Shown: positions 13,066-58,530 of the stretch, in pieces | Numbering within the stretch: position 1 is the first letter of the stretch | Layout: the number at the start of each line of letters is the position of its first letter | Origin: Pavona decussata | Taxonomy: Eukaryota | NCBI GenBank assembly: GCA_977016875.1 | Contig: CDRNST010000180.1 | Location: 1,736,001 to 1,800,000, forward strand | Direction: 5' to 3' | DNA length: 64,000 nucleotides | Made by a program: the position numbers and the translations under genes | Notes under the pieces: model-generated | Told to the model about the DNA's origin: nothing | What the model saw: the letters and a program-made list of their open reading frames with translations, nothing else | Database searches by the model: none

Positions 13066-13512
13066 CGCTTTAAGTACGCTCAAACAAAACGTACACACTC
13101 TTGAAGGCGACGAAGGCGATACCGCCCCTGAATGTTCAGCCGCCTTAGCAACATTTGGACACTGTGTCCCACTAACAAGCATCGAGCCCAGATGAGCGAT
13201 GTAACTCGAGGCAAGACGTAATGTCTCTATTTTTGACAGTTTTCTATCCGACGGTTCTGTTGGTATAAGAACACGCAGCGCGCCGAAAGCTGAGTTGACG
13301 AGGTGCGTTCTACTCCGTTCCCGTGCATTAGCAGCTTGCCGTTGCTTGCTGAGGCCTGTGAGCCGAGGTCTTCTTCGTTTCCTCTTACTGATCTTTGAGC
13401 TGTTTTCTCCGTCGGAGTTGTGCTGCTTGGGTGATGAATCATAATCGTCCGAGTCCGTTGCGTTCATGTCTCTTAGCTCGGTTCTTTGTTTCCTCTTGCG
13501 TGTTCCCTCCAT
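13066..13512 (-). CDS. paraxis: bHLH gene 1: Paraxis/Scleraxis (TCF15/SCX) orthologue, exon 1
   Basis: [52 protein letters not shown] plus the downstream CTFCLS motif diagnostic of Paraxis/Scleraxis. First ATG at 13512. GTAAGT donor at 13065 (phase 0). The unspliced ORF would run to 13003. Confidence 0.93.
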
Positions 13513-15759
13513 TTTGAAATAAAAGTAAAACAAAAAAATCAGTACAAACACAACGCAAGTAAGGGAGCTGCGTCAAAAATCTCACACGGCCATGGATGCC
13601 TATGGCAGTCAGTAATAGCCAGTGAGTTTCAGAGATGAAAATATAGAAGCAACTCTAGATCCAAAATTTGCATAAGTGATCATTCAGGAAAGAGTTGTAT
13701 TTTAATACTGGGCGGTCTTTTTGACGAACCGCAGGAACTCAGAACCGCCGATTAGCTGTCCAATAAGAACTGCAGTATCAGTTATGTTATGGTCTAGAAG
13801 CGAGAATTCTAACACAACATCCTTGCTTGTTGACGAGATAATTGCTGTTCAGACCTTAGAGGGCAACCTCGCTTGTGTTGTGGAATTTGCCATTAATTTT
13901 AGTCACAAAGCTCAATGGTTTGCGGGCCGTTTAGTGACTACAGATTGATTCCACTTCTTACTAGGTGTTGAAGAAAGATGACTGTTCAAGTCGACACGCG
14001 ATTCTGGTAGAAACTAGCGTGGATACACATGAGGGGATCATGTGATATTTCCATCTGCACAGAAATGTTCTGTAAACTAACTTCCTCGCTATCAACGAAT
14101 AATTGAAGCTAGGAGGAGTCCAAGAGCATTAGCAGGAATAAAAAAAAATACTGCTAACTGGAACGGAGCCATGGCATTCAGCTTTCATTCGATTAATCGG
14201 ATCTTGTTACCTCAAGTGAATTTAACAACATTTGAGTTAATAGCACACTTGAGAGCAGATTTTCAAGAGCACTCCACTTGACTTAAAACCCTTATCCCTA
14301 TTAAAATCCGATGTTTTCTGAACGGAGAAAAATGATCCTGGCAAAGTGTACTCGCATGTATCATCGTGCTTGAAGGAACATATACAGTCAAAACAAAACA
14401 GAGACGATTTTGTAATTTCATCACGCAATTTTCTAATGTCCTGAACAACTGAAACTTTTAAGTAGATGATATATCCTTCCATTTTTCCTAACTATTCAGG
14501 CGACCTTCGGTTTAAACACTTGAGATAATCCCTGGATTTATTTTATCAAGGTCTTGACACGGTATGCGCGGAAACACAAAAGAAAGACTGAAACAAGCTT
14601 TGAGGAACACTTAAATGTTCCAAACATCGATCAGGACTACTGCAAATGGTGCAAATCACCACGTCAAGTGAAATCTTTAGTAAGACATGACATAAACTTC
14701 ATGGCTTTTCAGTTTCTAAAATATTGTCCACTGATTGGAATGAATTTAATTACGAGAAATAGTTCAGGTACTCCCTTTTATAATCCTAAATTTTCATCTT
14801 CAGCGAGGAAGTCCGTGGTGCCAATTTTGCGTGCCTTGAGTACCGTAAAAGCTGTTGTCCTCTTTTGATACTATTTGAGCGTCAAACGACTTCACAGGAC
14901 TTTATGCTATCAGTTAAACTAATTCACATCACATATTTAAAAGGCTAAAGTCTTGTTAAACTGAGCATACCTTTCTAACGAGCACGTCATGCTCCATTTG
15001 ATCGTTGTCACAAAATCGACCCGCGAAGCGCGTCTAGGCTCAAACGACGTAGTTAGATGCCTTTCCTTCGAAACGGAAGACTGCTATAATAAAAAAGGAC
15101 AAAAACAATAACGCGGAGATTCAGTAAATCGGTGGAATTTTAGCCGCGTCTTGCTCGCACTTCAAACGTCTCCATCAACCGTATGTTCGGACTTTCAGTT
15201 GAGCATGCACTGCAACCGGATACACGGCAAATTAGTTGACGTCATAACGGAACAAGCCCTTTCTGTTAATAATTATTCATTTCCTGTATGAGATTCTCCC
15301 TCATTTCCTTGTCTACTATACCATTTACAGGATTTACAGTCCTTCCTGTGAAACCGCCAGGTCATTTATACCATTCGGTGGTGAGCGATAAGAGTATCCG
15401 CACTTTCTCTCTATTTAAGTTTGGCGGTCTTTCTCTCAATTGTAAGATTTGACTCTAGGAGTAACTTTTACTGTCAAGAAGGACATTATTTTTTCCATTT
15501 TCTTTAGTGATTTTCGTTCAATATTGCACTTCGTGTACAAGGCCCTTAAATTTGGAATGACAGCCCTCTTTCCTTACGTAATTTGCTTACTATCTCGAAT
15601 TATAGACAAAAACTTAGAGATTACTTCCAATCATTGTGAATTCGTGTCTTTTTGAACTCTCGTACAAACGGCTTAGATTATTTAATAATTTATTTGTTAT
15701 TCGTTTTAGTTATTATTATCATTATTACCACTATTACTATTGTTAATATTAATATTTAT

Positions 15760-16126
15760 CTATTTATTTATTTATTTATTTATTTATTTGTAAACTGTAA
15801 AGTAATTGCACCATCTTGATCAATATCCTGTATGACTTATGCCATATAAGCCCCTGGCTTCGGCATCTCGAGGCGTGCTTGCGCAATCTCCCGCCTCTCC
15901 AGAGGCTCATGCATGATAAAGTGCTTGACAATAACCGAGATCGAATTGGAATTTGGAAATGTTTTTTCAGGAGAGGGGAAAACCGGAGTACCCGGTGAAA
16001 AACCTTTTGGAGCAAGGACGAGAACCAACAACAAACTCAAACCACATATGACGCCCGAGTACGGGAATTGAACCCGGCGCACGTTGGTGGGAGGCAGGTG
16101 CTCCCCCTACTGCGCCATCCCTGCTC
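15760..16126 (-). mobile_element. tRNA-derived SINE (GAGCAGGGATGGCGCAGT head family)
   Basis: Same head and body as the copies at 56478 and 57265. A/B-box-like motifs and a (TAAA)n tail. Confidence 0.8.
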
Positions 16127-17732
16127 AGCCCCAATCACCTTAATCACTAAACCTCAGTTTTTTCAAACCAAAACAGTTCATAAACTTTGAAGCCACATAC
16201 TGTATTTACTGAAAAAATAAAACAACAACAACACTCCTATCAATTTAAAGGTCCGCCTCAACTGATCATATGTCGGAACTGCCAAAAACGACATTAATTT
16301 CCTGGAGCAGTACCGGGAATTTATTTACTTAGGTAATTCAGATTTATCAGCTGATTTATAAACGAAAAAACACGGCCTTCTTGTCAGTGCAGTAGCCCTT
16401 TCACGGGAGGAGGGTAATACCATCCCCCTCCCCCTAAAAAAGACTGCGTTGGAGGCTACTCATAGGTATTTGCTACTGTAAGGGAAAAATAAATTTTCAA
16501 AGCCACACATGTCAACCCAAGTGAATCGCCTAACTCGCCATCAGTCTCCCAGCAGCACAGTGGTTAGAGCATCTTTTCGGTGTACGAAGGTCCTGGATTC
16601 AATTCCCGAGGATGACTGCGGAGTTTTTCTTTCAGTATCCCATCCATGTGACATGTGACATGCTAAATACTACAGCTTTGAAAAGTATTGTGTTAACTAT
16701 TTGACTTGTTATGTTGGAGATTACCTAGCAATCTCGCGGTGCGTCGAAAAATCGCAGCAAGATTTTACCAACCTATAAGGTATGCTGTATGTGTTTACTC
16801 CAAACGTTCCATGAATCCGCGATGTACACAAGAGCTCCTGCTGTGTTAGTTTAGAAATCCACCACATTTGCCGCAAAAAGAAGCCAAAATAGCCTGAGGA
16901 AGGCTTGATACTCACTGCAGGGGCATAACAACTTGGCTGAAGCGAGTGTTGGACTAATGTGATGTGATCATGACCATACTTATAGAACAAAAACCGTTGG
17001 TGTTAAGGGAAGACTTTCTCCGAAGTGAAGCCAGCTTCTTGTTTGTTATCTTCTACAACTTGTGATACTAAGATCCTAATTGCAAAAATGCAATATCATT
17101 GCAAAGCCCTCGTAAACAAATGTTGCGTATCATTTAATTTCGTGAATTTGAAGTTGAACAATCAGAAACTGTCGAGGTTGTGCGAGTGAGTCAAGGCTGG
17201 CTACATCCCCAATCCTTCTAGACAAGAATGTGAGATAGTAGTCCTGAGAGCCTTCAGTTTAATGACGACGAAATCCCTGGTGCAAGTCAGAACTATTGAA
17301 GAAACTGAAAAATTCCGGTGAAAGACTCGAAACACAATCGAACACTAACCCAAACAACTGAGCAACTGATCCTACTCCAAAATGAAACTCATTTAACCTG
17401 CCGATACGTATTAACAAAAAGAGTGTTAGTCAAACCTAGTCTAAAAGTACTGAATGTTCAAATGAGCTCAGTCATGTACGAATACACGTGCTTGGTGAGT
17501 TATACAACTAGAAAAGTTCACGTGCAGTGAGATCCTTTTGACATGCAGAGATCGGATAACCCCAGCAGAGAAAATACAAACGGTCGTCGGGTCTTTTTAA
17601 ACAAAATTAATGGCTTTGTGTTGAGTCAAAAGACTTATACCAGCGTAACGGCGCGTGGCTACAATCCTAAATATGTTGATATATTGCGGCAGCACTCGAT
17701 AAACACACATTTAACGCAGAGTCGTCTCCGAT

Positions 17733-18054
17733 ATGGACGTCACACCTATTGGGAAGGTAATACCACAACCCAAGAAGAGACCTCGGCGACGAGGACCCCG
17801 CCTAACGGGTGTGAGCAAGCAGAGAAGAGTAGCTAACGCAAGGGAAAAGAGGCGAATGGAAACTTTGAATATGAACATTCAAATACTGCGACACATGATC
17901 CCTCTTCCACCGCAAGACAGGGAACCTTCTAAAACTGAAGTGATATGGCTGGCTGTGGATTACATTACGGAGCTAAACAAAATGTTGGAATCAGCTAACT
18001 TCCTTGAGAGCCTTGACAGTCTAAAAGGAAGTCCACTTCATTTTAATTTTGAGG
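17733..18054 (+). CDS. bHLH gene 2, Paraxis-related paralogue, exon 1
   Basis: RRGPRLTGVSKQRRVANAREKRRMETLNMNIQILRHMIPLPPQDREPSKTEVIWLAVDYITEL. Donor G|GTAAGT at 18055 (phase 1). Confidence 0.9.
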
Positions 18055-18886
18055 GTAAGTATTTTTGGGTGACGTAATTACTTCAAGAAATTGGGACATG
18101 TGTGCGATTTCGTAGATGCGCCCAGGCATCAATGAAATGGCTAGCAAAATTGTATTTAGGTACAGCTCTTACTGCAAGATTTATGAATTTACATTCCTCA
18201 GGATTTTTTTTTTTTTTTTTGAGATTTTGAAGCTACACTGAGGCCACCAGAATAATATTTTGCAGGCAGAATTAATGGGCGGTTGTGAAAAGCTGTCACC
18301 AATTCCTGAGCTACAAAGCTGTTCTGCGTCGACCGTACATAAAAGTTAAGTCGCCACTGAAGAAAAAGAAACCTGACTGGGAAATGAAGCTGAACATTAC
18401 GAATAAACAGTTTTTACTTATATCTCTGGCGGTGTCCAACCCACAGGCTAGGCTGCCGTGTAGTGTGCAAGTTTGAGTGAACTAAAGTTCTACGATACTT
18501 TGCCAAACAAAATCTTTCGATTCTTTAACTTGGCCTTCGTGGGAAGTAGAATCAGCTGAGCTATGAAATGTTTGCCAAGACAACGTAACCCCAGATAGTC
18601 GCAGCTGTGTCAAGCGAATTCCACTTTTTTGGACTCGTGCTTTTCTTTTTTTTTTCCCTTTCGAAAGGAAACAAAACACGTCTTGGACGCAAATCACAAC
18701 ATAAACAAGCTTGTCATTGGCATTCGACTAGCAATTAATAAAACCTCGAATCCATTTTTTTTGGTTGATAAAACTTAACCGGCACTGTCTAAAAGACAGC
18801 CACCTGTACTGTTGTTGATAACCAAATTTAGTTGCCCCTTGTTGCTTATGATTGATGATCTGACAACCTCATTCTTTTTCTTTCAG

Positions 18887-18960
18887 GTTGTGCACCTGAC
18901 CCTGACACTCTAAGAATGGTTCATAAATTTAGCACAACGCCTCGTTCTTATGGACTTTAG
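18887..18960 (+). CDS. bHLH gene 2 predicted exon 2 (GCAPDPDTLRMVHKFSTTPRSYGL*)
   Basis: Acceptor TTCTTTTTCTTTCAG| at 18886. A homologous acceptor is present in gene 4. Confidence 0.65.
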
Positions 18961-20133
18961 ACTGATTTACAACTAAATACTCTTGAAACTTGAATATATT
19001 TGCAGGCTTTCTTTACGCGACTGCTTAAGTTGCGTAAATAATTCCGTTCTATTTAAACCAAATACTTTGCTACGAAAGTTGGAACAATAAGAGAAGAGTC
19101 CTTTCCAGTAGTTTCCAAAACGGAAAATTGTGAATTCGTTATGTTGTTCATTCTACAGAGCTCTAGACTAGACCGATTGATTAATATGGAACTGAATCGG
19201 ATGGAATAACTTTCTCATCTGTCATGTTGTATCAGTTAAAACGTAGCTTTAACTTGTACTTTATATTCAAATGAGAGAAATATAAAATTGAGTGTAACTC
19301 GGTTGTACTTGATATAACGTTTTACTCTCAGTAAAAAGTTCCTTCAAAGTGAAAAAGTTGCTCGAACGTAAAAAAAAACTGCATGCCCGCTCATTTCTGG
19401 ATAACTAAATGATTTTCCCCTAGCTATGGTTCAACAGCTCTTTATTTCTCGAATAAATAGTCGTCCATTTCTTGAGGAAGGCTGAGTCTCAGACAGCCGA
19501 ATCCGCAAATGTAAAATTTCATGAAATATATGACTGAGTTTTTACAATTTACTATTTTGTAAAACTCCGACCGACAAATCAAATGGTATAATGGAATGTC
19601 TCACGGCACATTCAGCAAAGATGGCCTCCCAAACCTCGACGTGGTGACGTAACGTTTTCTCAAGAAAACGACAAAGATAGATTCCATTTTCCAGTGAGTG
19701 ATAACTGAACAGACACCAAAATGTGCTGAGGAATAAGGATTTCTTTATATGGTGAGAATATGGTCCGTAAAGCTCACTGGTCACCCACTTCTTGCCTGAC
19801 ATCTTTCAAGTGAGTGTTTATCAGTTGTCCCTTTTGAGCAGGTCACAGTTCATGAGTTAATTTCGATTTCTTTGTTCACGTAAGTCACTGTGGTCATTGT
19901 TTAGTTGACTTATTTCTTTGATATCAATTTTGCAGCACTACTTGTTTTATTAAGGCTTAACGCAACACACGGCGTCACCCTCAAAAACATCGTATTATGC
20001 CCAAAATTGTGCTCGAATTCAAGTATTTGCTTGTTACTATGCTGTGCAGAATTCCTCCCGCACCACATCCTTCGAACCTCAAACCTTTGCTGCTTACTTC
20101 TCCAAGAGAATGAATGTTTCATTCATTATAAAA

Positions 20134-22462: not shown

Positions 22463-24128
22463 TTTTCTGCCTAGAAGGGCAACTCTGCCTTCGAAAACGG
22501 GTGACCCTACCAGGCGACTAGCACTGCCATGACGGTCATATTTGAGCTTGCCATGTAAATGGTTCACAGCGTTTTGTAAAGAAATGCATCAAATACTGTT
22601 GACTCTTCTACCAGGGACATCTTTACGCCATATAAATTTCAGGGGCCCCAAGTGACTCGACTCGAATCGACTGCCATCGCAGGCGAGTCATTTCTTGCTT
22701 CTTATTTTGGAATCATCTGTGTCTCAGTTCAAGGAATGTTTTTTTCAGAAAAGAATGCGGCAATTCGTGATCATCAAGCGGAAAAAGATCGATTGGACAT
22801 TTATTTTTGTTTTACTGCGGCTTCTTAAAAGTGAATTGTTTAAGTACGTCCAATTGTGATAATTGTTAACTGGGAGAGCTTGCAGTTATGAACCACAACA
22901 ATCAAAATGCTAAAAGCCGACTTAATAACAGGTCGTACGGCGCATTTAAGTATTGTTTGTATTTTAGTTCTAGTTAATCTTATCGATGCATCAAGTAATT
23001 GCGTGAACGTCTTAATCTTACGATTAAAGCACGTTTCCATTAAAAATCAATTTGTTCAAACTATTGCGAAGGTATCTTGAAACCCTTCTAGAAAACAATA
23101 GGACAAACAACTTGACAATGCCCCCGACCCTAAAAACAATAGCAGCTGGCTACACAATTTTAAAACAATTACAAGCTTATGAGAGCTGCTACACTACTGC
23201 ATCAGTGGAGGTATTTGCAATTTTAAAAAAGCTGATCATAGTCTCTTGGAGGTTCACATTTCAAATGCAACCAAGAAGGGCTCCTGAAAACGTCAAGATT
23301 AAAATCGTTTGTTTGACACAATGCGCTGTAAAACAAGAGCTCCTTGTTGCATAAACGGTTTATAACAAAGGCACGCTTGCAGTCGTAAATATTTATAACT
23401 AATTTTCTATTTTTGATTGAACGATTTTCAGTAGGGAGCTTTATTAGCCAAGTAGAGTTAAAAGGAAAGCATTTAAAATATCCCCATGTGGGCGTCGAGT
23501 TCTGTTCGATATAACAGCGCTATAAGACATTGGCATGCCGACAAATATAAATAAATACTTTTGATATTTTACAACAACGAAACCGTTAGTAAATGTTCAC
23601 CCAAAAATCAGCTACTTTCTTCTTGGATCGTTATTCAGTGAAATAGTTTTAGCTCATGATTGGTCATTTCCAAGCATAAGAAAAAATAAATATTTTGGAA
23701 CAGTTCAATTCTGAGGGGCCTTAAATAGTACATATTGAATACTATTGAATGTCTTGAACCCGTGAGAGACTTTGTCCAGTTGCTTGTATTTCCATCACTG
23801 ATTCTGGGTTGGCTTCTGATTGGATGAACCTTGTGCAGATTAGAGGCCAATGTTTGGTGTATCCAAGCTGATCTTGTTATTTACAAATGGCACACATTCC
23901 TTGATTACTGCCTGCAGTCAAAGGATGAAAAAGAAAGTATGTGAACTGAAAGCTGAATAGAGCAATTCGGGTTTATTTGCAATAAGACAAAAACTAATCA
24001 CGGAAAATACAAAAGTAATGAATTGTTAGCTCTCTAAGTAATGCAGACTTAAATTCGTAAATCACAATACATTTTGTTCACTTTATCACTTATGTAGCAT
24101 ACAAACAGGAAAAGCTGGTTTAACTCAC

Positions 24129-24427
24129 CTCAAAACTGGTTCTCTTTCTTTAGGTTCTTCTTCCTCTTTTAACAGCAGCATCAGTCGACCGATGTAGGAA
24201 GCCGCCAACCAGATTATCTCAGTTTTTGAAGGTTCTTTGTGTTGAGGTGGAAGAGGTATCAACTTGCGTAAAATCCTGATGTTTGAATTCAAAGTGTGCA
24301 CCCGATTTCTCTCTCTGGCGTTCGCCAACCTTCTTTGTTTGCTTAGGCCTGTCAGCCGGGGACCTCGACGCTTCGGTTTCTTTTTGCGACTTTGTGAGGT
24401 TTCTCTATCCTTCGGTATGTTCTCCAT
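24129..24427 (-). CDS. bHLH gene 3, Paraxis-related paralogue, exon 1
   Basis: [60 protein letters not shown]. Donor AG|GTGAGT at 24128 (phase 2). Candidate acceptor TTTCATCCTTTGACTGCAG| at 23912 adds only Q* (23905-23911). Confidence 0.9.
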
Positions 24428-39534: not shown

Positions 39535-39882
39535 ATGTCCTCATCGAGTGAAGAGCAATTGACAGAAGATTTATCGCACGGCAATGACGAGACACAAAAG
39601 AAGAAACGGCGTCGCAAGGTTTTGAAAAGACGCGGACCTCGATTGACCGGCGTGAGCAAGCAACGCAAAAAAGCAAACGCACGCGAGAGAAACCGGGTGA
39701 ACATCTTGAACAACTACATTCAACTTCTACGGACTCTCATTCCTGAATCAGAAGAGAGGGCTACCAAGTTCGATGTGATTATTGGAGCCGCGACGTACAT
39801 CTCCCAGCTAACGTCGATTTTACAAGAAGAAGAGAAAACGGAATCGATGGATGGTAGAGATTTGTTCAAACTGGACTGCTGA
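39535..39882 (+). CDS. bHLH gene 6, Paraxis-related paralogue (apparently single coding exon)
   Basis: RRGPRLTGVSKQRKKANARERNRVNILNNYIQLLRTLIPESEERATKFDVIIGAATYISQL. ATG-to-TGA ORF. AATAAA at 40209. Confidence 0.9.
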   Translation: MSSSSEEQLTEDLSHGNDETQKKKRRRKVLKRRGPRLTGVSKQRKKANARERNRVNILNNYIQLLRTLIPESEERATKFDVIIGAATYISQLTSILQEEEKTESMDGRDLFKLDC

Positions 39883-42731: not shown

Positions 42732-43157
42732 ATGGTTAATTCAACGCTATGCGCCGTACGAGTCCTGCCCACCCGTGTTCCTCCTATGTGCAAGTTACAA
42801 ACAACAACGATCCCCACACCGCTGGTACAAGGAAAGAAAAAACACAGAAGACGAGGTCCGCGGCTAACTGGTGTAAGCAAGCAAAGAAAGTCTGCAAATG
42901 CGCGCGAAAGAAACCGCGTGCGTGTTATAAACAACGCCCTGGAGACGCTGCTAGATCTAATACCGTTGTTGCCAACGGAGAAACGGCCTTCCAAGATAGA
43001 GACCGTTCGTTTGGCAGCGCTGTATATCCATCATTTGACGGAACTGTTAACAAAAGTTAGAAGAAACGGACCGGCTATCGATCAAGGGCAGGGAAAATGC
43101 GAGACATATAGCGTTGAGATGAAACAGGAACAAATTGTAGAGCAAGACTTTGTTTGA
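42732..43157 (+). CDS. bHLH gene 7, Paraxis-related paralogue (apparently single coding exon)
   Basis: RRGPRLTGVSKQRKSANARERNRVRVINNALETLLDLIPLLPTEKRPSKIETVRLAALYIHHL. First ATG at 42732 (alternative 42786). Confidence 0.9.
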   Translation: MVNSTLCAVRVLPTRVPPMCKLQTTTIPTPLVQGKKKHRRRGPRLTGVSKQRKSANARERNRVRVINNALETLLDLIPLLPTEKRPSKIETVRLAALYIHHLTELLTKVRRNGPAIDQGQGKCETYSVEMKQEQIVEQDFV

Positions 43158-46100: not shown

Positions 46101-46688
46101 GTTTTTGCTTTCCATCCAATTCTCTTCCCAAATAATAATTCGTTATCAGGAAGGACAACTTGTTTTATTTGATTTGAACTGACGTTTTATTTTACAAAGA
46201 GAAAACAAGCTAACATGAAATCAATAACATGCTTCATAATACCTCACAGCTTGAGAACTATTAAAGTTATATGGCCTGAAGGTCGGTGTAATAATGTATT
46301 TACTATCATCACTAATTATGAAATTTTAAAACTCGTGATACGCCTTTAAATTAATGCCAAGTGGTTACTCTCTTTTCCAAGGCCCAGCCTTGTTTAAGCG
46401 TTTTATAACTCTATAACTACAATAATGTTCCACGGAAGTGATGAGTTCATTGTGTGTCTTCTATGATCACCAGCCACTTCAATAAGCTCTTCAAATAGTA
46501 ATTGATACGTTCGTCTACAGACAGTCAATTTTCAGTTCAAAGAAGCCTCCGAGTCTACGAAGGAAAATGCAAGCACTATTTTAAAACACGCCAAACCAGA
46601 ACTAATGCAGAGGAAAGCAACATCTGTTAAACTATTTATTTAGTGTTATTTTTCGCAGTGTAACTTTCTTTAAAAATCTTAGAAGACG

Positions 46689-46702
46689 TTAAAGGCCTTT
46701 AC
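46689..46702 (-). CDS. bHLH gene 8 predicted exon 2 (GKGL*)
   Basis: Acceptor TATTATTTCTTTCAG| at 46703. AATAAA on the minus strand at 46635-46640. Confidence 0.5.
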
Positions 46703-46879
46703 CTGAAAGAAATAATAGTTCGCTAAGATCTAGTTCTGACAACGAAGAGCAACCACCGTCGAGGCCAAAAAGATCGGCAACTGAAAGTAAAACACAAAAA
46801 TACCGTCAGCAGATCAATGATACAGCAACAGCGTTGAGAAAGATGTGTTTATCAGTCGGTGACACAGCCTATATACTAG

Positions 46880-47010
46880 GAAAAAAGGAAATCCGAGTTC
46901 TCCTCAGTAACAGGAGTCGAACCTATGACCTTCCAATTACTCAAATTCGGATGCTCTACCACTGAGCCGTGATAGGAGATTCATGGGAGCTAGGACATTA
47001 AACTAGGTTG
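46880..47010 (-). mobile_element. tRNA-derived SINE fragment in the predicted gene 8 intron
   Basis: GGAGTCGAACCTATGACC...GCTCTACCACTGAGC is the reverse complement of tRNA B/A boxes. Relatives at ~49230-49330, ~49780-49920 and 16545-16640 (+). Confidence 0.65.
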
Positions 47011-47050
47011 AAGAACAAGAACTACTGTAAGTACAATAATCATGTCTGAC

Positions 47051-47405
47051 CTGTTACATCTATTAGGGTAAGGTCCAAGCTCTGTGAGACATGTACCACA
47101 TCAACAGCATTTTCTGATGTGGTCGTGTCCACTGGTTTCTCTGTCTTCTGCAGCAATTCTGTGAGAAATTCAATATAAGTCGCTGCCATCCATATGACTT
47201 CAGTCTTAGTTGGCCGCTTCTCGTATGGAGACAGTGGAATAAGCTCGCGTAGATTTTCAATATGTGTATTCAAGGCCTGTACTCTTCGTCTTTCACGTTC
47301 GTTGGCCATTTTACGTTGCTTGCTCACACCCGTCAGCCGAGGTGGCCGGCGTTTGTTCTTCTTCCGCGATGTTCTTTTCTCGATCTCTTGGGGCTCTTTT
47401 CCCAT
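47051..47405 (-). CDS. bHLH gene 8, Paraxis-related paralogue, exon 1
   Basis: RRPPRLTGVSKQRKMANERERRRVQALNTHIENLRELIPLSPYEKRPTKTEVIWMAATYIEFL. ATG at 47405 (in-frame upstream ATG at 47492). Donor G|GTCAGA at 47050 (phase 1). Unspliced stop at 47040. Confidence 0.9.
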
Positions 47406-50400
47406 TCTACCTATGTTGGCCGTTTTACCTGACGTTTCCCGACTTAATTTACCTTGATATGCACTGCCGCGTGGCGTATGAGAAATAAACATATACAAAC
47501 AATGTTGAACCTAAAATAGGAGACGCAACACAAACAATCTCCTCCCATTTGCTTCGGCGAGTCTTCAAGATCCAGTTACTCCTCGCGGGAACGCCAAAAT
47601 GCGGTTCCAATAAAGTGAAATATAAACGCTGGAAGTCGATATTTCTTTTGACACGTGAAAAGTAAACGTTTCCTGGGTCAACAAAGTAGTTTACCCTTTT
47701 GTCAACGTACAAATCCTTGCAACTCACTCGAATACCGACCCGGAGGCACACCGCACTAAACATTACCGGAAAGGATTATAAAAACAAGGTTCATCATGCA
47801 TCTCAGGTCAGACGCCTCATCACGTCAAGTGAAAGGTCATTGTAGTAGTAAACACTGGATATTACTGGGAAAAAAATGAATAAAATCATTTCGAACCCAC
47901 GACCAAATCACTGAGTGGTTAAGTTATATATTGTTCTGATGAGAGGTTTAACAAATGGAATGCTTATTCTATCGTGATCAGATCGAGTGGCAGCTATAAC
48001 CGGAAATTGTTTTCCGACGGTACAACTTATAACGTCATCACCAGTTGTTAATTACTGAACATTTGAGCGGGCAAGAACAAGAAAAACTATCTTTTTAGCT
48101 TTTAACGCAACTTGCTGGCTCAACAATTGAAGTTAAATTTCTATAAAAAGGTTGGTTTTGCACAAAACCAAAGGGTGCAGATTGGACTGCCAAACCGTGG
48201 ATTGTTGAATCTCTTTCCAAGAATGCGTCAGAGCCAGGGAGGGATACCTCAGCTATTTTTGGCTATGTTCTTATAAATCAGTATTTCTAGACCTGTTAAA
48301 TTATTAGGTGGACACTATGAGCAAATCTAAAACAGCTGATCTCTGTTATGATTGGCGGTGAAGACGTTAATTGGAAAGCAATCGAGCGCATAGTGGAAGA
48401 AACAATTAACTTCAGGAAATTGTTAAAATGGGGTCTTCAAACATACCTTCGGCTAAATATATCTCCCGAGTTAGAAATGCTTCGGTTTTAGTGGTTTGAT
48501 TGGGAAACCAACCCTAGTATAAAATATTAGCTTGCTAGTTGGAGGGAACTCTTATTTACAGCGATGTACTGAGATCTGAATTCCTTCCAATTCATACTCT
48601 GTACAAATGTAAAGTCTGAAAGTTATTAATTTCGAAAAGGCCTTAAAATGTTTGAGCAGAGCATTTGCTATGACTTTGAACCTCATTTCACTGCACTGAA
48701 ATTTAAGAAACATAACCGAGGTTTAAAGTTTTCAACCGAAACCGATATCACCGGAAATGAGCGAAACTTATTTCTCCATCAGTTCAGTTGAGAGAAAGAA
48801 TTCAATGTTTTATCAAGAACAGCAGATGTTTACCGCAAATTTGTGGGACTTTTTTTTCAGATCTAGTCATTTTACCTCTTCCGCCAAGATGGATTCGCTT
48901 GTGTTAAGTGGAAAAAATATATATTCAAAAAGGGCCGAAATGTCTCTAACTTAGATTGCTAGAACCGTAGTTTACTTTTTCTGTCAAAAATGGTCTACAA
49001 AAGGGTAAGGGTTTGGACCTTAGGGCGGAATCTCCTCGTATAATATAAAACTTTGTTGTGTACTCCCTCCCTACGGGGGGCTTGGCTGACGAAAACTAAC
49101 CTCTTGCGAAATTGAAATGCATGAAGGTATTTGAGAGTCGCTAGTTTGAGTAAATTCATTTTGGGAAGAATGTGATGGCCTGGTTAGTGAAATGAGAACG
49201 ATGTATTTTATTAGTAATTTTCACAGGCAGACTCGGAAAAAGAAAGTCCAAGTCGGACAGGAGTCGAACCCATGACGTGCCTTAATCATTAATAGTCCGG
49301 ATGCTCCATTGAGCTATGTAGACTCACGAAAACAATGTCAACTTGTGTCTTTTACGACCTCTACAGCGGGAAAGACTGTCATCACGCTACCAGCTAATGA
49401 TTTGCGTATTTCACTGCCGTCAATCATAATTACGGCGACTATTGACTGACCACCAAGTACAGAAACCGACAAAGTGGATCGAAATCCTCCAATCGCAGCG
49501 CAGGAACATGACCCTTTGACCCCGTTGAAGCAAACGCCCTTTTTTCTAAGAGGTCCGCTGTAGTGATTGACGGCAGTGAAAAGCGTAACGGTTGGTTGAA
49601 TTTTGAACTTCAGTGTCCGCATGTTACTGGAAGGCGCAGTAATTTAGAGAGCAAATATTCACGTTGAAGAGATGATGGATCCCAGAGTAACAAAAGCAAT
49701 ATGGCGGTCCTTCCAGACTTAGTGCTCACTTTCCATCCCATATTACATTACGCTTCACCAGGAAATTGAAACTCTTTGTGTGTGTATAGGAGACTTTGTG
49801 GGAGCAAGGCCAGGTGTGAAAAACAGTCTGCATACAAATTCAATTACTAGTTTGGAAGCTCTACCACTGAGTGCGCTACAGGAGACTTGGCCATTTAAAC
49901 TAGGTTCACGTGACAAAGATACCATCTGGTCTCACTCCCACGCGTAGAGGTATCCGGACTAAGGATCGAAAGATCCCAGGTTCGGATTTTTTGCGAGTAA
50001 ATGCCTGTGTCGCTGGCTGATAACATAGGAAAGTTATGACTGACAAAGTACATCCTTATTAGAGGTTTTGGGGATTGTACTGAAATGAAAATAATAAGAA
50101 CAAAAATATCGGAGTTGCTTTTTCTTCTACTGCACTAGAAGTAAGAGCACAGTTACAACTGAGGTTAGCTTTCACCAGTCACCTCTCCAGTCAAACCATC
50201 GAATCATAGTTTTCCTTTAATTTGTCATCGCCCATGCAGTTTATATAGTCACACTAAAGGAGACTTATAAAGAAGCCGACATCATGCTCTGAAATGGTTC
50301 TGTGAAAAAAATGCGACAATTATACTATTATAATATCGTGGAGATTTAAACTCTTGACCATCCACTAACAGTATGCCGTCACCTGAGACCCTGTAAATAA

Positions 50401-50506
50401 AACCATGGATAAAACACAATTGGTTACTAGTTTCCTGAGGGGACGACCTGGGAAGCCAAACTAATTAAGTTCTTTCTAATTTTGTAGGCAGGTTTTATCA
50501 ATTTAA

Positions 50507-50736
50507 GGCTGCGTTCGATTGACTGTATTCCGGAGTAGGAATACATACAATGATGACAAGAAAATCCCTCATAAGAGGTTTTTGGAGTTACTGGGGTACG
50601 AGATGACTCTTAAATTCTCATGTGTCAGCGAAAGTTTGCAGAAATTAATGTCTTCCCAAATTTACTTAAAAAGAGATTGAATCTAACAGCTATTCCACTT
50701 ACTCTTATTCCGGAATACGGACAATCGAACGCAACT
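50507..50736. mobile_element. PIF/Harbinger-type MITE
   Basis: TGCGTTCGATTG...TATTCCGGA and TCCGGAATACGGACAATCGAACGCA inverted ends, with TAA/TTA flanks. Confidence 0.65.
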
Positions 50737-50816
50737 TTAATGTGTTAAATATAATAGCCGAGTAAAGAATAGACCTTGAGTAAAATATAATGGTCATTAA
50801 TTTCAAAGCAAACTTC

Positions 50817-50964
50817 AGGCTTCAGATGTTTCAAGAGCGGATAACTTTATCTAGCAGATAAGTCGCTATCCAGCGGATAAAAGGTCATAAAATGAATTTT
50901 TGTCCGCTGGATAGCGATTTATCCACTGGATAGCGTTATCCACTCAGTTGAACAACCTTGGCCC
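50817..50964. mobile_element. Palindromic MITE rich in GGATA/TATCC repeats
   Basis: GCGGATAACTTTATCTAGCAGATAAGTCGCTATCCAGCGGATAA mirrors TTTGTCCGCTGGATAGCGATTTATCCACTGGATAGCGTTATCCAC. Confidence 0.65.
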
Positions 50965-53659
50965 ACTAATTAATTTTGTAATTTAACTAAAAACAGGTGG
51001 TCATGAACGATACTAGTCAAGAAGACAAAACAAAACGAGTCAGCATCATTTGATCATTTGCAGGGAAGACACTCGATAATTTTCACTACTACTAATAGAA
51101 GTAGTATGATCTTTAATTACCGAGGGTGCCACGCAATAGCATGAGCCAATAAAAATAGATAATAAAATAACAAAACTGTGCTACAAAAACGATGTACTAT
51201 TATTATTCATATTCATAATGACATGCGATAGAGTGGTTTGATCACAAAGCTATTTCATACGTCCAAACTGACATTTAGTCTTTTTACTTCTTTGTTTGAG
51301 TAGTTAAAGCTTTCTTTCTTTTCCTCCCTTTTTTGTAAAATTGAGGTGTTATACGTTATTTTTCCCTTTTGCTGTATTATGATGAATTTCGAGGTTAAAT
51401 CAAGTACATTAATCCTAGCTTCAAAGCAGACAAAACGGAAACCAACGCTCGGTGAATGAGAATTGCGGTAAATTGTTGCCATCGTCTATTGACTCCTGCA
51501 GGCAAAGCTCGATGTCGAGTAATACGGGGACGCCCTACTCGCGCCACTAAAGCTGAAAAGCATTCGAGACTTGCTCCTGCGGTCGCTTCATCAGTTTAGT
51601 TCAACTGAGAGGATCTGAAAGACAGGGATCTAGAGGCGCAGCAGAGGCAACCTCGTTCCCAGGGTCTCTCTTCGTCTCATTCGGGGATAACCTGGACAGG
51701 GACACAACCAAAACCAAAGTTGAATGTTAGAAAAGTTTTAAGAATCCTATTTATTGATTCAAGGCACTGAGACTTTAATAATAAAACTGAGGTGATCAAG
51801 TATATGTCCAGCCACCGGGGTACGGATTTTGAGCCGGTTTTTTTCTGCAAATGGGTATAGATTCAACCAGTTTGGTCTGTAACTCCCACAACGGTTATGG
51901 AGTTTTCGGGATTTTCGTAGAAACTGGCATTGGAAGATTACTTATTTTGGTCTGAAATAAGGCCACGTTTTAGAGAACGGCGCACCTTTATTTTAAATTT
52001 TCCCTTTTCCCTTTCCACAGCGTCATTGGTAGTTCTTCATCCTACAGGCTTCTGTAGATTGAATGTAATGTGAGATTATGAGGCGACGCTGGCTACAGAA
52101 GTTATCGCTAGTTATTTTGCTCAATTTGTCCAGTTTCTACACATAAAATCATTTCCAAACGATAACATGAATTCTTTTTGGAAAAGCTGACCCAGTCTTC
52201 GCTGCATGATGTTTCACATAAAGAGGAAGTATATTTTTGCGACCACCATAAAATAATTAAATTTTATGGTTTTTTATTAAATTCATTTCGATTCACACGC
52301 GTCCAAGTCTCTAACACTTGCCCGCCCAATCACCATAGGAAAGTAATATCTATTTATGTGTGTAGCGCCTAGAATTCATTCAGGATGCCTTAGGGAGTTC
52401 ACAGGAACTAACATTTGCATACCACGTCGGTACTGTTAGCTAAATATTCACCAGGGTGGTTTAATTTATTGTTACAAGTTTTTGGATTGCGTCGTCCAGT
52501 TTCTACGAGCTGTTGTTCTCCCTGCTGAGTTTAGCGTTCTTCATCATTGTCTTTTACTTTCAAGTTTCCATTGCCACAGTTTTGTAAGTATTGCTCTTAG
52601 TTGTTTATTTGTTTATTGTTAATTGTTTATTTCGCGTAGTTTGTAATTGCTTTTTTCAGCTCGCATGTTTCTTGTGGATTTCTATTTTCGGTTTTGTTTA
52701 CTGATTTCAGTTGAATCAGTTGTCATTTGTCCATCTTCGCTCATATTTCGTTTTGTATATTAAAAATGCATTCATCCTGTGGCTTGTCATCTTCATGTTC
52801 GTAGCGGTGATGGCTTCGGGCACCCACAATGTGCAATGCTTGTTAACGGCATAAACATACTAAAAGTCAATATTTCGTTTATTTTTTCGGAGCTGAGTAA
52901 AATAGGTGGTTTTCATTGCCGCCATGTTGGTGTACAAAACAAAAGGAAATTTGTTCACATAGTTTGAGGAGAGGAAAAATATCTTATTCTTCCCGGCACA
53001 CCAACATGGCCACCATGACGTCACATGCAAACCATTAGCAGCGTTCTTGAAACAGCTTGGTGCCGAAGGCTGTGTGGCCCTCAATGACTAAAAACTGCCT
53101 TCTTTTTGTGTCTAGTGCGTAAAATGTACTGGTGAATTCCATGAATCATGATCATATTTGTGGAGATTTTACTCTTTGCTCAAAAGATTTCAGTCAGTTT
53201 CCATTTCGTGATGCGTTACATGAAGTGAAGTCTGGATGTTAAGCGTCATGTAAGTAACCATGTCGATATTTAATCGTGATTCGATGCATTCGGAATCTTT
53301 CGAGATCTATACAGTATACACATCATTCGCTCGAATGCCAACGAATATTCGGAGCCAATTAAACGCGGAAAACGTTTCAGGGCGAAGTGTCAAACAATCT
53401 TCGTGCAAATCACGTGGTTTTGGAAAAGAGAGAGAGTTGTTTTGGTGAGTATTTCGTTGTGCTTTTGGAAAGAAGCGAGTGCAGTAACAACGTTCTACTC
53501 TAGTTAACTGCTATTCACAATTTAGTGTGTGTCATGTTACAGCTAAGGTGAATAAACAAAGTTGCTACATGTGCTACAGTCAATTGTTATTCACAGTTTC
53601 TGACAAAAGATGTTTTACAGTTAGGGCAATGAACACAGTTGACACATTTTTTTAATGTT

Positions 53660-56245
53660 AGGGACCTGTCATTATTTATCGCCTGGGGGGGATCGAATGA
53701 TTTTGGGCTAAACACGATGAAATTTAGCCGATCCCCCCCTTAAATGTTATTTTATTGAAGCGATCCCCCCTCATAACTATATATAACTTTCGTGACCCCT
53801 CCCCCCACCCCATGTCTTTGTACCCATAATCACCTTTCGACGTGTATATTTAGTGTTTTAAACGTTCATATACAGGTAGTATTTCTAACTATGATGTACT
53901 TACAGCATAATAAAGCCATTATCGCGTAGTATTTTTTTAAACGTGTCTCTTGATCCGTGTCTCTTTCTAGTCTGGATCCAGACATCTGAATTCAGTTGAC
54001 ATACAAGCAATCTTGCTTAAAACTGCAAAGTGCTTGAAACTGCAATCAGTGCTTGAAACTGCAAAGTTACTCTTTTTAGAGTGCCAAATAGCAGTCCGCC
54101 AAGTCCCTATCAGCAGGTTATATTTAGCGACTATTCGGCCATCTGGAAGGGCTAGGATCCGCCACTGTTCCTGTCTCCTTTTTTTTTTCTATAGTGTAAT
54201 AGATCAGCCTTTTGTAGCTTTGCTCACATTTTCATAATTTTTTTTGTTCGTTTTTTTTTATTTTTTTTTTATTTTTGTTTTCCTTTTTTTTTTTCATCCA
54301 GTGTTTACTTGTACAGTAACTTCAGCTATTTGGTCATCTGGTACAAAAGTTAAAACTGGCATACGAACAGTTGACTGTAAATCGAAATCAGCAATGGCAA
54401 GATCATCTTCGCTATCCTCGTCATCATCTAACTCCGTATCTGATTCTTCACTCTCTTCCTCACTGCTGGACAACTCATTCCCGTTGCCTGGACTTCCCTG
54501 TCGATAGTAATGGTAGCGAATTACCTTTATCTTGTCCAGCTTTATACCAACAGTGGTCAGGCCATGTTCCTCAAGGTACAGGTCGAGCTGTCTCACCTTC
54601 AGCTTTTCAACTTTGCCATTCTCAATAAGTATGCCCCACTGGTAGTCCTTGTATGTTGGTTCCTCTTCTAACCTTTTTTTTTTCCTTAGCCTCTCTTGTT
54701 CTAATATCCTTCCTGATGTTGATATCATTTAGATGGCCTACGTTTTCAATGACATGCTTTTCCTCGACACTATAGGTTGCACAGAAAGCAGCGATGGTAT
54801 TTGGATTGTCCGCAGAGATGGCGTTTTGTTCGTACAAGTCCTTCGGACATTTCCTCGGTTGATAATCGTCTGGAGCATGACCTGTTGTCGGCGTTTCGTA
54901 CACATCCATAAAGTGTCCGGGATTTTGCTTGTCTGGCACAGGCTGAGGGATTCTTTCTGTTACTGGTCCCACCCATCAGTTGTTGGTACACCAGAAACAG
55001 AGTGTGGAGCTTGCATCGCTTTGCTTATTGCAGGCATCCCGATAAAATTAAAAAAAGAGCTCCCCTCGGACGTAGTGGTCCTCAATAAAACTCTCTATTT
55101 TACTAAGATATGCCGCACCGGGTATTTCGGCCTTATTGTTTTCTGAAGCATTTCGGTACGTACGTATTTAACTCAGAAGCATTAAAAAAGAATAACTCTT
55201 CGGGAGACTCACTCACTCTACTACTGATGTAATCCTTCAGAACAAGGGCGTCGTCTATCCTTTCGGCAACCTGCTTGCAAACGTGCCAAGCATTTTTTCC
55301 ATACGCTCTTTTTCGTACTGTTCGTAGGAATGGACAAGCGACTCAAGCAGAGGGCACGTCATCTCTTAGGAAACTTGACCTCAATCGAGGTCGCGGGGCA
55401 AATTTTCGGTTCAATCGAAGAGAATGATAGAGTTACTCCTGTAGATAGCATCAATGCTGACTTTGCTAAGAAACTAACAAGGCATTTGCATCTAGACCCT
55501 TTGCTATGGCTAGTACAAAAGGGTAGTTTTAGCACGACCCTAGCAAAAAATCTAGAGCAAGTAGCAGCCATTTTAAGGGCACAAAGTCCAGGGTCACCCT
55601 GCCGAAGGGGACTAAATGTTGTTGTTGAATCGGATGACAAGGCTCAAGAGGCAAATGAAGTTGTTGAATGGGATGATGAGGCTCAAGATGAGGCAGATGA
55701 AGCAGTTGGATCGAATTTAGTATAGAGCTGACACAAGATGCCCAATTCCTGGAGAGGCGATAAATGGTTTATTTTTAAACAAACACGCTTTTTACAATAA
55801 TTCAGTTATCAGAAGTTTATATAGTTCACAATTTAGAATCCACCTGTCATGTTTAAAGATGAATATTAGCTAAGTCATAAAAGTTATAAAAGGAAAAATG
55901 TAGAAGCGTTAAAACAAAGCTTTCTCAATATAAATTGAAATGCTCACATTAGCCAGTGTGACAGACTTCCGTTTTTTAAATAAAGTTGTGTTAGAACAAA
56001 TTGAGATTACAAATGCTACCATCTCCCAACAGAATGGGCACATTTATGTTGTATGCTTTCAAACTGGCATTGTTCAAGCAGATTTGAGTGGTCCCCCCTC
56101 TGAATCCTTCCAAAATTTTCAGTGATCCCCCCTTTTGGGCTCTCAGTTACAACTGATCCCCCCCTCTGTTCTCCTAAAAATCAAGTGATCCCCCCCCCCC
56201 CAAAATCCTCCAACCCCCCCAGGCGATAAATAATGACCGGTCCCT
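53660..56245 (-). mobile_element. 2.6-kb internally deleted DNA transposon with 31-bp TIRs and a broken ORF ending in a SAP-like motif
   Basis: AGGGAC(CT/CG)GTCATTATTTATCGCCTGGGGGG at both ends (30/31 match). Subterminal GATCCCCC repeats. Minus-strand protein relic at ~54294-55350 with stops and frameshifts. Confidence 0.8.
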
Positions 56246-56477
56246 TTATTGCTATTCTCAGCTATTCTCACTATACAGGTAAGTCGTTTAGGTTACAGTT
56301 CAATAAATAAAGAAAGTTTATACATGGCATCTGTTACAGTTATCAGTAATTGCTCTTCATGACTTAACGCAGTCAAACCAACAAATAATTTTTTATTTGG
56401 AAAAAATAATTTTTTACTGGTTTGCAAAGTTCCACATTTACAGTATTTATCTTGTATTAACATAATTGAAGAGATAC

Positions 56478-56740
56478 GGGAGCAGGGATGGCGCAGTGGT
56501 GAGAGCACTCGCCTCCCACCAATGTGGCCCGGGTTCGATTCCCGGACTCGGCGTCGTATGTGGGTTGAGTTTGTTGTTGGTTCTCGTCCCCGCTCCGAGG
56601 GTTTTTCTCCGGGTACTCCGGTTTTCCTCCCTCCACAAAAACCAACATTTCCAAATTCCAATTCGACCTGGAAACAGTGGAGAGAAGAGCCACCCCGTGG
56701 ATTCCACTGAAATTCCTATTTATTTATTTTATTTTTATTT
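56478..56740 (+). mobile_element. tRNA-derived SINE
   Basis: GGATGGCGCAGTGG (A box), GGTTCGATTCC (B box), (ATTT)n tail. Confidence 0.85.
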
Positions 56741-57265
56741 GATATGTGGAATTAGGCCCTAGGTGCATGATTCTTGATCTAATGACAAATTCTCTCTGTC
56801 TCACGAGAAAACACAAGGTAATTTGTAGGGAGAATGTAGTGGTTTATCAGAGGTCATTTGAGGTCTTTTCCCATTGATCCAAGGAACTATTCCACCACAG
56901 TGAATGGTTATTCAATGACGCTTTGTGTAAGTCCGCAAGGGTAAAAGCCATTCTCGTTATTATTCAGAACTAAATTAGCCACTGCGCAATAGCAAATTGC
57001 TATATACACGTAAAGCATTTTTTACCGTATATTGACTGCTATTCATGTGTATAGCAATTGACTGTGAATATAGAAATTTACGCTTCACTTGTGCGTGTCA
57101 GCAGTTTCATAGCTACTGACTGTGTAGCTATGAAACTGAACACTAGCACAAGTGAAGTGTTAATTAAGTATTTAAGTTGTTTGAAACATTTGCATTTAGT
57201 GCATAACTCTTTCCCGCTATGCCCACGTCCAGACACATATACTCTACGGTTTTCTGTACATCCAG

Positions 57266-57529
57266 GGGAGCAGGGATGGCGCAGTGGTGAGAGCACTCGC
57301 CTCCCATCAATGTGACCCGGTTCGATTCCCGAAGTTGACGCCATATCTGGGTTGAGATTGTTGTTGGTTCTCGTCCTTGCTTCGAGGGTTTTTCTCCGGG
57401 TTCTCCGCTTTTCCTCCCTCCACAAAAACCAACATTTCCAAACTCCAATTCGACCCGGAAACAGTGGACAAATAGCCACTCTGTGGATGTGTCACTGAAA
57501 TTCCCATTTATTTCATTTATTTATTTATT
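57266..57529 (+). mobile_element. tRNA-derived SINE with 9-bp TSD
   Basis: Same family as the 56478 copy. TSD TACATCCAG at 57257-57265 and 57530-57538. Confidence 0.9.
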
Positions 57530-58163
57530 TACATCCAGAGAACTCATTATTAAAACAAATTATGGGTAACGTTATTGTGGTTAGAAGAAGAGGGGTGTGG
57601 GGAATTGCTTTTTGACACTCCCAAAATAACAAGTACATTTTAATGCGTTTCCATTGGCTACATCAGATCTCTTTTTTAGATACAACATTTACTTCATGTA
57701 ATCACCTCGAATTAGCCGCAATAGACACACGTACGCATTGCGACGACAACGAATTTAAAAAACGACGGAACTCTTATCCACGTTCAGCTGTTGATATAAA
57801 CTTCCAAAAGTGCTACTTCCGCGACCACAAGAAACATATCAAATGTCGTGAACGGAATTTTATATTAAACTGTGGCAACCCTTGGAAGGTCAAAAAACGT
57901 AAAGCAGAGTTTTATCACGTCAAAAAGAGCACTGACGCTTTCGCAAACGAGTTGAAGCCCGGATGTGCGGGTGGCTGGTTTATTTTTGCGCTCTTGGTGC
58001 AGTCAAGTGGGCACCAATTCTGACGTACGTGACACGGCAGCTAATGGGCTGCGTGCCGGGCGATAGCGATCGACCTACTGCACAATTCCAATAAGACCTC
58101 TTCGTCTTAAAAGAAAACAGATCGGCTTCAAAAGCAAATTAAGTTCACAAAGACAAGTTAATC

Positions 58164-58530
58164 ATGGACAACGACGTTGCAGAAGAAACTCTGACACAAC
58201 CACAATTAAAGAAGAAAACCAAGAGACGAGGAAGGCGATTGACTGGCCTCAGCAAGCAACGAAGGACAGCGAATATGCGGGAACGAAATCGGGTTCATGT
58301 TCTGAACGATTGTATAGATCGATTGCGAGAGCTCATTCCATTGTTTCCGAATGAACGAAAACCTTCGAAGACGGACACTATTCGGTTAGCAGCTCTCTAC
58401 ATTTCCCATCTGACAGATTTGCTGGCTGTGGAGAACACTGACCACCCAGAAATAATGCGTGGAGAAAGTTTGGACGAGGAGATGTCAGTAACTTCATTGG
58501 AGTTTGATCCATTCGATGTGGAGACCGCAG
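58164..58530 (+). CDS. bHLH gene 9, Paraxis-related paralogue, exon 1
   Basis: [63 protein letters not shown]. Candidate donor G|GTATTG at 58531 (phase 1). The unspliced ORF ends at 58571. Confidence 0.92.

Follow-up and report, generated by a model that had tools for sequence, protein, structure and literature searches.

The locus described here, from the coral Pavona decussata, raises the question of why nine genes for basic helix-loop-helix (bHLH) proteins, whose helices have diverged strongly, should all retain the segment RLTG(V/L)SKQR at the edge of the basic region, and whether that segment is a novelty of this animal's lineage or something older. We analysed the locus as a window of 64,000 nucleotides (positions 1736001-1800000 of contig CDRNST010000180.1, here C180, in a 602-Mb assembly; 40% G+C, zero N, nothing resembling human sequence), in which a six-frame scan for RLTG[VL]SKQR gives exactly nine matches. 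Every match lies inside an open reading frame (ORF) that runs from ATG to stop and encodes 100-169 amino acids (aa), and the nine genes are labelled g1 to g9 by their order in the window. Comparison with other animals indicates that the motif is inherited and older than the cnidarian-bilaterian split, having apparently persisted in Paraxis and in two or more sister families of bHLH proteins and been lost from the canonical TCF15 of amniotes. It is reasonably probable, in our judgement, that the cluster preserves this ancestral motif as a capped N-terminal extension of the DNA-binding helix, accompanied by a basic arm resembling a nuclear localization signal (NLS).

Constraint on the motif among nine bHLH genes

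The nine products share a common layout, and all match the Pfam HLH model PF00010 with 44-67 bits against a cut-off of 20.7. A short variable N-terminus leads into a run rich in lysine and arginine (the K/R run), which closes in an invariant RR and is separated from the motif by one or two small residues (G/P/R, P/R); after the motif come two variable residues, the basic region ANxRE(R/K)xR, helix 1, a loop, helix 2 and a variable acidic tail. The A, N, R, E and R of the basic region are identical in 9/9 ORFs, and the xxANxRERxR pattern of group A E-box binders is recognizable in them, with g2 reading REK instead of RER. A preliminary description of this DNA had reported a K/R run and RLTG(V/L)SKQR ahead of ANxRE in all nine proteins, and both the scan and the alignment bear this out, with a gap of two residues before ANxRE. 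It had also placed the motif upstream of the basic region, and of this claim only a part stands: the motif does precede ANxRE, but the Pfam HLH model has its position 1 at the last Arg of the motif and the structure predictions make SKQR helical, so that the motif straddles the N-terminal start of the basic helix and is not wholly upstream of it.

The nine-way alignment contains 25 invariant columns (RR, R-L-T-G, S-K-Q-R, A, N, R, E, R and nine positions scattered over the HLH), to which the motif contributes 8 and the remaining HLH, some 45 columns long, contributes 9. Expressed as pooled Nei-Gojobori proportions of nonsynonymous and synonymous differences (pN and pS) over 12 genes of this genome, a measure distinct from site-wise codon-model dN/dS and taken among paralogues whose synonymous sites are saturated, pN is 0.09 for the motif, 0.24 for the rest of the basic region, 0.33 for the K/R run and 0.45 for helix 1, with pS about 0.8-0.9 in each (0.84 in the motif). 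The motif is the most constrained block of the regions compared, and the earlier observation that it is better conserved than the helices is borne out.

Such uniformity might arise if tandem copies were homogenized by gene conversion, or if selection acted on the nucleotides themselves. Two features lend themselves to this explanation: g2 and g4 form a recent inverted duplicate (pS 0.03 and pN 0.03 in the conserved block, with differences mainly after helix 2), and the S-K-Q codons are nearly fixed. Against it, pairwise pS is 0.6-1.0 for all other gene pairs, synonymous sites in the motif are as saturated as those elsewhere, and identical nucleotide tracts across the copies are not seen. Three or four codons are used for each of Arg (CGG/CGC/CGT/CGA), Leu (CTC/CTA/CTG/TTG), Thr (all four) and Gly (GGC/GGT/GGA), and conservation of the segment is just as strong in genes outside the cluster and in other phyla, as set out below. 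We regard conversion or nucleotide-level constraint as extremely improbable and, since pS is saturated except in g2/g4, count eight independent old copies rather than nine. The view that third codon positions vary freely, and that the constraint acts on the protein and does not reflect recent copying, is likewise upheld, with Ser (AGC in 9/9 genes) as the exception among the codons and g2/g4 as the one recent pair. Chance is also excluded, as a degenerate DNA pattern for the motif finds 12 matches in the genome against 3 for a reversed control, and 10 of the 12 lie in the cluster; one of the others is an unlinked bHLH gene and the last a chance Ser-Phe match.

We note that the S-K-Q triplet is almost always written AGC AAG CAA in the nine genes, whereas elsewhere in these genes AGT is found 23 times and AGC 11 times. 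It is a matter of speculation that AGT AAG is perhaps avoided because it would create a splice-donor-like GTAAG string.

Paraxis, its relatives and the age of the motif

The first gene of the window, g1 (13003..13512, minus strand; 169 aa; motif RLTGLSKQR at 13339-13365), was searched as an unspliced ORF and is most similar to unnamed coral sequences (77-95% identity). Its best named match is a Nematostella 'transcription factor 15' (66% identity), followed by an octocoral scleraxis-like protein and by TCF15 and TCF15-like proteins of vertebrates and amphioxus. The ORF represents exon 1: a consensus GTAAGT splice donor lies near 13065 (window positions ~13060-13070, minus strand), right after codons for L-K-A, and the orthologues diverge beyond that point, so that the last ~17 codons of the 169-aa ORF are probably intron read-through. 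A C-terminal CTFCL, invariant across 120 aligned orthologues, is present in g1; the ORFs of g2-g9 are without this tail and for that reason are not classed as Paraxis. In a maximum-likelihood tree of the HLH region alone, g1 falls inside the Paraxis clade (support 98/94) and g2-g9 form a separate clade (99/96). A closest relationship to TCF15 and SCX, the helix 1 sequence RTHxVN and a loop and helix 2 of Paraxis/Scleraxis type are found together in g1 only. By its HLH and CTFCL, g1 is a full member of the Paraxis/Scleraxis family, with which it shares a K/R run and RL(T/S)G(V/L)SKQRQA common to cnidarians through tetrapods, whereas in g2-g9 the helices are divergent and the S/T-K that closes the loop is preceded by Pro, not Leu.

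For genes of this second kind a name exists. According to Cole et al. (2023; PMC10060217), nem7, nem24 and nem64 are bHLH paralogues of Nematostella vectensis that lie on chromosome 2 in one cluster with paraxis and twist; they are called Cni-PaTH for their place in the Paraxis/Twist/Hand superclade, are expanded in anthozoans only, and are described as unassignable to bilaterian families. Judged by their sequences, g1 is an orthologue of Paraxis/TCF15, and g2-g9 appear to be eight old tandem paralogues of Cni-PaTH type.

The preliminary description had taken the motif to be a lineage-specific module, and a comparison limited to model vertebrates would indeed suggest novelty, for the canonical TCF15 of mammals and birds is without RLTGxS. 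A search across proteomes, which it had proposed, gives a different answer. In a survey of the best 119 homologues of g1 with a readable basic region, the segment is present in 42/42 cnidarian Paraxis sequences, and a K/R run with RL[TS]G[VLI]SKQR ahead of the basic region is found in every anthozoan Paraxis recovered, in amphioxus (where it reads KLTGVSKQRQQ) and in the coelacanth (RLTGISKQR). Among other vertebrates it is exact in the salamanders Lissotriton and Pleurodeles (RLTGVSKQR) and appears as RLTGFSKQR in bichir, as RLSG(V/L)SKQR in frogs, turtles and lizards, and as RL(A/V/L/C)G(V/I)SKQR in many teleosts. More than 100 Paraxis-family proteins from Cnidaria to tetrapods carry it, the vertebrate carriers being annotated as TCF15, TCF15-like or scleraxis. 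With occurrences in amphioxus, hemichordates, a priapulid, cartilaginous and bony fishes, amphibians, reptiles, octocorals and a hydrozoan, an origin of the module in this animal's own lineage is refuted, and we give it next to no credence.

The related statement that vertebrate TCF15 and SCX do not carry the segment requires division. It is correct for canonical amniote TCF15, as represented by database matches from a lemming (Lemmus) and a bamboo-partridge (Bambusicola), on which the loss in amniotes rests; these keep only (R/K)QRQA, the RLTGxS part being absent. It fails for the many other vertebrate TCF15, TCF15-like and scleraxis proteins listed above. Several matches on short contigs with Paraxis-type helices are also without R-L-T-G.

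The motif also occurs in two further old bHLH families. A motif-centred profile of 39 positions, run against 1.84 billion representative proteins, gives 741 matches at E <= 0.001, a divergent amphioxus 'scleraxis-like' protein among them. The first of these families is represented in this genome by an unlinked gene of 137 aa (contig C95, 177631-177915), which has seven K/R, an exact RLTGLSKQR and a long loop; members of this long-loop type, which is perhaps Mesp-like, are present in corals and two anemones, Actinia and Nematostella, and related proteins exist in amphioxus and Saccoglossus. Branchiostoma belcheri has the exact segment, and the long-loop proteins of Saccoglossus and octocorals read RLTGLSQQR. 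The second is represented by a gene on C180 at 1734680-1734919 (L012), an eleventh member of the cluster about 1.1 kb before the start of the window, with MLTGVSRQRRA, a short loop and the helix 2 sequence AAKWIDHLT. Its relatives, in amphioxus (C3YC00), the hemichordate Glandiceps, Priapulus, the sawfish Pristis and Hydractinia, where helix 2 is more divergent, share MLTGVS(K/R)QRRA and in most members AAKWIAHLT, and their public names conflict (TCF15-like, twist-related, neurogenin-1-like). For both the long-loop and the L012 genes, look-alikes in the ESM Atlas were generic bHLH clusters with equally conflicting names (TCF23-like, HAND2-like, NHLH2-like, NeuroD-like).

A helix-loop-helix protein attributed to a bacterium was also encountered (RefSeq WP_257296552.1, Endozoicomonas sp. 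YOMI1, on an 8.5-kb contig), with GPRLTGVSKQRRM and a bHLH domain. As Endozoicomonas inhabits invertebrates of the sea, corals included, the likeliest source is host DNA that entered the bacterial assembly.

Counted over distinct segments, the core of the motif is close to fixed in three of the four groups. In 106 Cni-PaTH segments T, S and the final R are invariant and L and G are each present in 105; in 31 segments of L012 type L, T, G, S, Q and R are invariant; and in 32 of long-loop type every position except Q is kept in 31-32. The 111 Paraxis segments, mostly from vertebrates, are more variable, with T 40, S 19 and A 15 at the Thr position and S 87 and N 10 at the Ser position. At the DNA level, the genes examined from coral, Nematostella and amphioxus invariably encode this Ser by an AGY codon (17/17), as is expected from unbroken selection for Ser since a common ancestor. 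Linkage is also shared: on Nematostella OW051986.1 the long-loop gene lies ~1.56 Mb from paraxis (L048 at ~3.24 Mb, L050 at ~1.68 Mb), and on Branchiostoma belcheri CM033055.1 the long-loop and L012-type genes are ~0.84 Mb apart (L047 at ~11.15 Mb, L045 at ~11.99 Mb). The presence of motif-bearing families on one chromosome in both amphioxus and Nematostella is possibly a remnant of an ancestral tandem array.

Predicted structure and candidate roles of the segment

AlphaFold2 monomer models of g1 and g9, built from 120-row alignments, place the beginning of the basic helix at the motif Gly in both proteins (H53-82 in g1, H28-57 in g9), with the Thr directly before the first helical residue and the Ser three residues on. 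Confidence at the start point is moderate, the mean predicted local distance difference test score (pLDDT) being 75 over residues 51-60 of g1 and 83 over residues 21-30 of g9, and 97 over residues 31-40 of the latter. The g1 model resembles the bHLH chains of TAL1, NeuroD1 and MyoD with template modelling (TM) scores of 0.82-0.86, normalized by target length, and a Foldseek search of the Protein Data Bank (PDB) with it returned generic bHLH chains only, which carry no information on the pre-basic segment. The closest solved structure by sequence is the TWIST1-DNA complex 8OSB (E 7e-13), in which L-x-x-Q-R aligns with (V/L)-S-K-Q-R, so that at least the last five residues of the motif fall within the solved Twist1 chain. 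The Twist family thus resembles the motif-bearing genes in having L-x-x-Q-R at the start of the basic helix, and the coral twist is linked to the cluster, but the Twist proteins of the coral and of Nematostella are without R-L-T-G and the adjoining K/R run.

In both AlphaFold2 models the basic helix starts 12 residues before the Glu that reads the E-box, which, set against the MyoD and Max complexes, would be about one turn earlier than usual. G-x-S-K-Q-R would then make up the opening one and a half turns of a basic helix that exceeds the usual length by about one turn, and the Thr as N-cap with the Ser at N3 would constitute a T-x-x-S capping box that fixes the start of the DNA-bound helix. 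The helix N-capping box, S/T-x-x-E/D/Q/S/T, is a general motif of protein structure; the Thr and Ser, as placed in the two models, would fit it, and where the Ser is replaced, Asn or Thr usually takes its place, but the classical N3 residue is acidic and the assignment here is made from predicted models. When the helix is projected at 100 degrees per residue, the Arg at -7 from the Glu, the V/L/I at -11 and the Ser at -10 would lie on the same face as the Glu, and the K/R position on the opposite face, which fits its free exchange between Lys and Arg; the invariant Arg and the V/L/I would face the DNA. The capped helix start may also anchor the preceding K/R run beside the DNA that flanks the E-box. 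This run reads (K/R)(K/R)x(K/R)RR directly ahead of the motif in all copies, with at least four K/R among the eight preceding residues (9/9), and matches the classical monopartite NLS pattern; it could additionally touch E-box-flanking DNA, although contact with DNA, nuclear import and any effect on specificity are proposed here by analogy.

The NLS pattern raises the possibility that the whole segment is a linear motif for nuclear import or for docking of a co-regulator, bound by an importin or a cofactor and taking no part in DNA binding. In the AlphaFold2 models the stretch that precedes the Gly is non-helical, as would be expected of a linear motif. However, the NLS-like K/R run is far less constrained than the motif that follows it, an NLS has no need of an invariant L-T-G-x-S, and SKQR is continuous with the basic helix. 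We therefore think a purely import or docking function quite improbable.

A switch by phosphorylation has somewhat different evidence to account for. Under this proposal a basophilic kinase would phosphorylate the motif Thr, the Ser or both, and the charge introduced at the start of the basic helix would shut off DNA binding or nuclear import. In myogenic bHLH factors, phosphorylation of a basic-region Thr blocks DNA binding, and the motif resembles those sites, as generally understood, in placing a hydroxyl residue in a basic context on the DNA-binding helix. The R-x-T context, with Arg at -2 and -5 from the Thr, and a T-x-x-S spacing suited to priming fit such a role; Thr and Ser are both invariant in 106/106 Cni-PaTH, 31/31 L012-type and 31/32 long-loop segments, and Thr to Ser is the commonest change in tetrapod Paraxis. 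The known myogenic sites, however, lie within the base-contacting basic region, whereas the motif Thr and Ser lie 10-13 residues before the E-box-reading Glu, and no strict kinase consensus is matched, with Pro at -3 and Gly at +1. Vertebrate Paraxis proteins replace the Thr by Ala (15), Gly (9), Pro (8) or Val (8), none of which can be phosphorylated, and the Ser mainly by Asn (10/111), then by Val (6) and Gly (3). Of these, Asn caps helices well and offers no site for phosphorylation, and the predicted N-cap and N3 placement would account for the invariance of Thr and Ser without phosphorylation. The preliminary description had named a DNA-contacting arm, an NLS or cofactor site and a phospho-switch as options, and all three are still candidates. 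Both the modelled structures and the pattern of substitution speak more for a cap and extension of the helix than for a phospho-switch, which we judge unlikely as the principal explanation, while noting that the two are compatible and not mutually exclusive.

Several points weigh against the inherited, capped extension that we prefer. In the HLH-only tree (54 columns, 50 rows) the Paraxis, Cni-PaTH and long-loop clades are each resolved, whereas their branching order is not, and no single clade of motif-bearing families is recovered; in approximately unbiased (AU) tests such a clade has p = 0.13 with all motif-bearers and p = 0.04 once the L012 gene, with its long branch, is removed. With the tree unresolved at depth, the case for a single origin is drawn from the motif itself, the shared linkage and the codon class. 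The roles as DNA arm and NLS are argued by analogy, and AlphaFold2 monomer models tend to draw basic regions as helical, which may affect a helix start of only moderate confidence. Gly at N1 is untypical of a capping box, and the Thr position takes A, V, G or P in many fish Paraxis proteins, in which the cap would be dispensable.

The cluster and its counterpart in Nematostella

The eight Cni-PaTH-type genes all lie within 45 kb of g1, on both strands. Nearest to it is g2 (17733..18077, plus strand; 114 aa; RLTGVSKQR at 17799-17825), which has orthologues in other corals, followed by g3 (24125..24427, minus; 100 aa; RLTGLSKQR at 24332-24358) and by g4 (26848..27225, minus; 125 aa; motif at 27133-27159), the inverted near-duplicate of g2. 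A Stylophora protein is sister (support 99/91) to g5 (34416..34808, minus; 130 aa; RLTGVSKQR at 34716-34742). The most divergent HLH, with a loop shorter by two residues, is that of g6 (39535..39882, plus; 115 aa; motif at 39640-39666); g7 (42732..43157, plus; 141 aa; motif at 42861-42887) is 85% identical to a Porites evermanni protein. An internal Met may be the true start of g8 (47040..47492, minus; 150 aa; motif at 47313-47339), whose sister is a Pocillopora protein, and g9 (58164..58571, plus; 135 aa; RLTGLSKQR at 58236-58262) has orthologues of 70-85% identity in Desmophyllum and Stylophora. The Porites evermanni protein matched by g7, a partial public gene model, joins a g6-like and a g7-like bHLH in the order and orientation of g6 and g7 here, which suggests that two genes were wrongly merged in the annotation and that their order is conserved.

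The array continues beyond the window. A tenth Cni-PaTH paralogue lies ~4 kb past its end (C180, 1804068-1804319) with the variant RLTGVSRQR, and is of a type also present in the anemone Exaiptasia, Acropora, Desmophyllum and Oculina. A Twist orthologue without the motif follows 53 kb past the end (C180, 1853000-1853260), so that the paraxis-twist linkage known from Nematostella is also true of this coral. A profile built from g2-g9 and the tenth copy matches 439 proteins at E <= 1e-6, the named matches being from Porites evermanni, Desmophyllum, Stylophora, Pocillopora, Montipora, Acropora, Oculina and Exaiptasia. Automatic annotation has labelled these inconsistently (neurogenin-3-like, atonal, Atoh1-like, FIGLA-like, scleraxis). 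For each of the coral paralogues there is a separate, conserved set of orthologues, one type being found in Exaiptasia as well, which indicates that the duplications are older than the radiation of stony corals and at least one older than the split between corals and anemones.

In Nematostella, a motif-bearing bHLH of 124 aa, paraxis and twist lie within 20 kb, and a further motif-bearing gene (RLTGVSKLR) is 25 kb away; the genes beside paraxis are g2/g3-like. The two loci are alike in having small tandem bHLH paralogues with paraxis, twist close by, an anthozoan expansion and the motif in the neighbours of paraxis. They differ in that the coral cluster is larger, with eleven motif-bearing genes in ~70 kb, where PMC10060217 names three nem genes. 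The coral locus is an expanded counterpart of the published anthozoan Cni-PaTH cluster linked to Paraxis and Twist, and this kind of locus is already known. In the available parts of Cole et al. (2023) and its supplement, no mention of the pre-basic motif was found, nor did searches of the literature for motif strings and for the Paraxis/Scleraxis basic region and NLS find a description of it. The motif seems to be an undescribed family signature, and it was probably overlooked since mouse, human and chicken TCF15 lack it.

A broader interpretation is more tentative, and we would put it forward only as a possibility with the balance of likelihood against it: that LTG(V/L/I)S(K/R)QR and its basic arm constitute a module more than 600 million years old, marking an unrecognized bHLH superfamily (Paraxis, Cni-PaTH, the long-loop type and the unnamed family found from cnidarians to the sawfish), that it reads the flanks of the E-box or gates binding by phosphorylation, and that its loss from amniote TCF15 altered the choice of targets.

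The importance of the motif is potential, its functional role being presumptive, and lies in three directions. As a shared derived character it would connect the 'orphan' bHLH genes of anthozoan muscle with Paraxis-like ancestors in a case that trees of the HLH alone leave undecided; among these genes is nem64, whose knock-out is reported in PMC10060217 to cause loss of the tentacle retractor muscle. It draws attention to two bHLH families with poor names, still present in amphioxus, hemichordates, a priapulid and a cartilaginous fish. Finally, it offers a short and precise target for mutagenesis in an animal in which knock-out and rescue are working.

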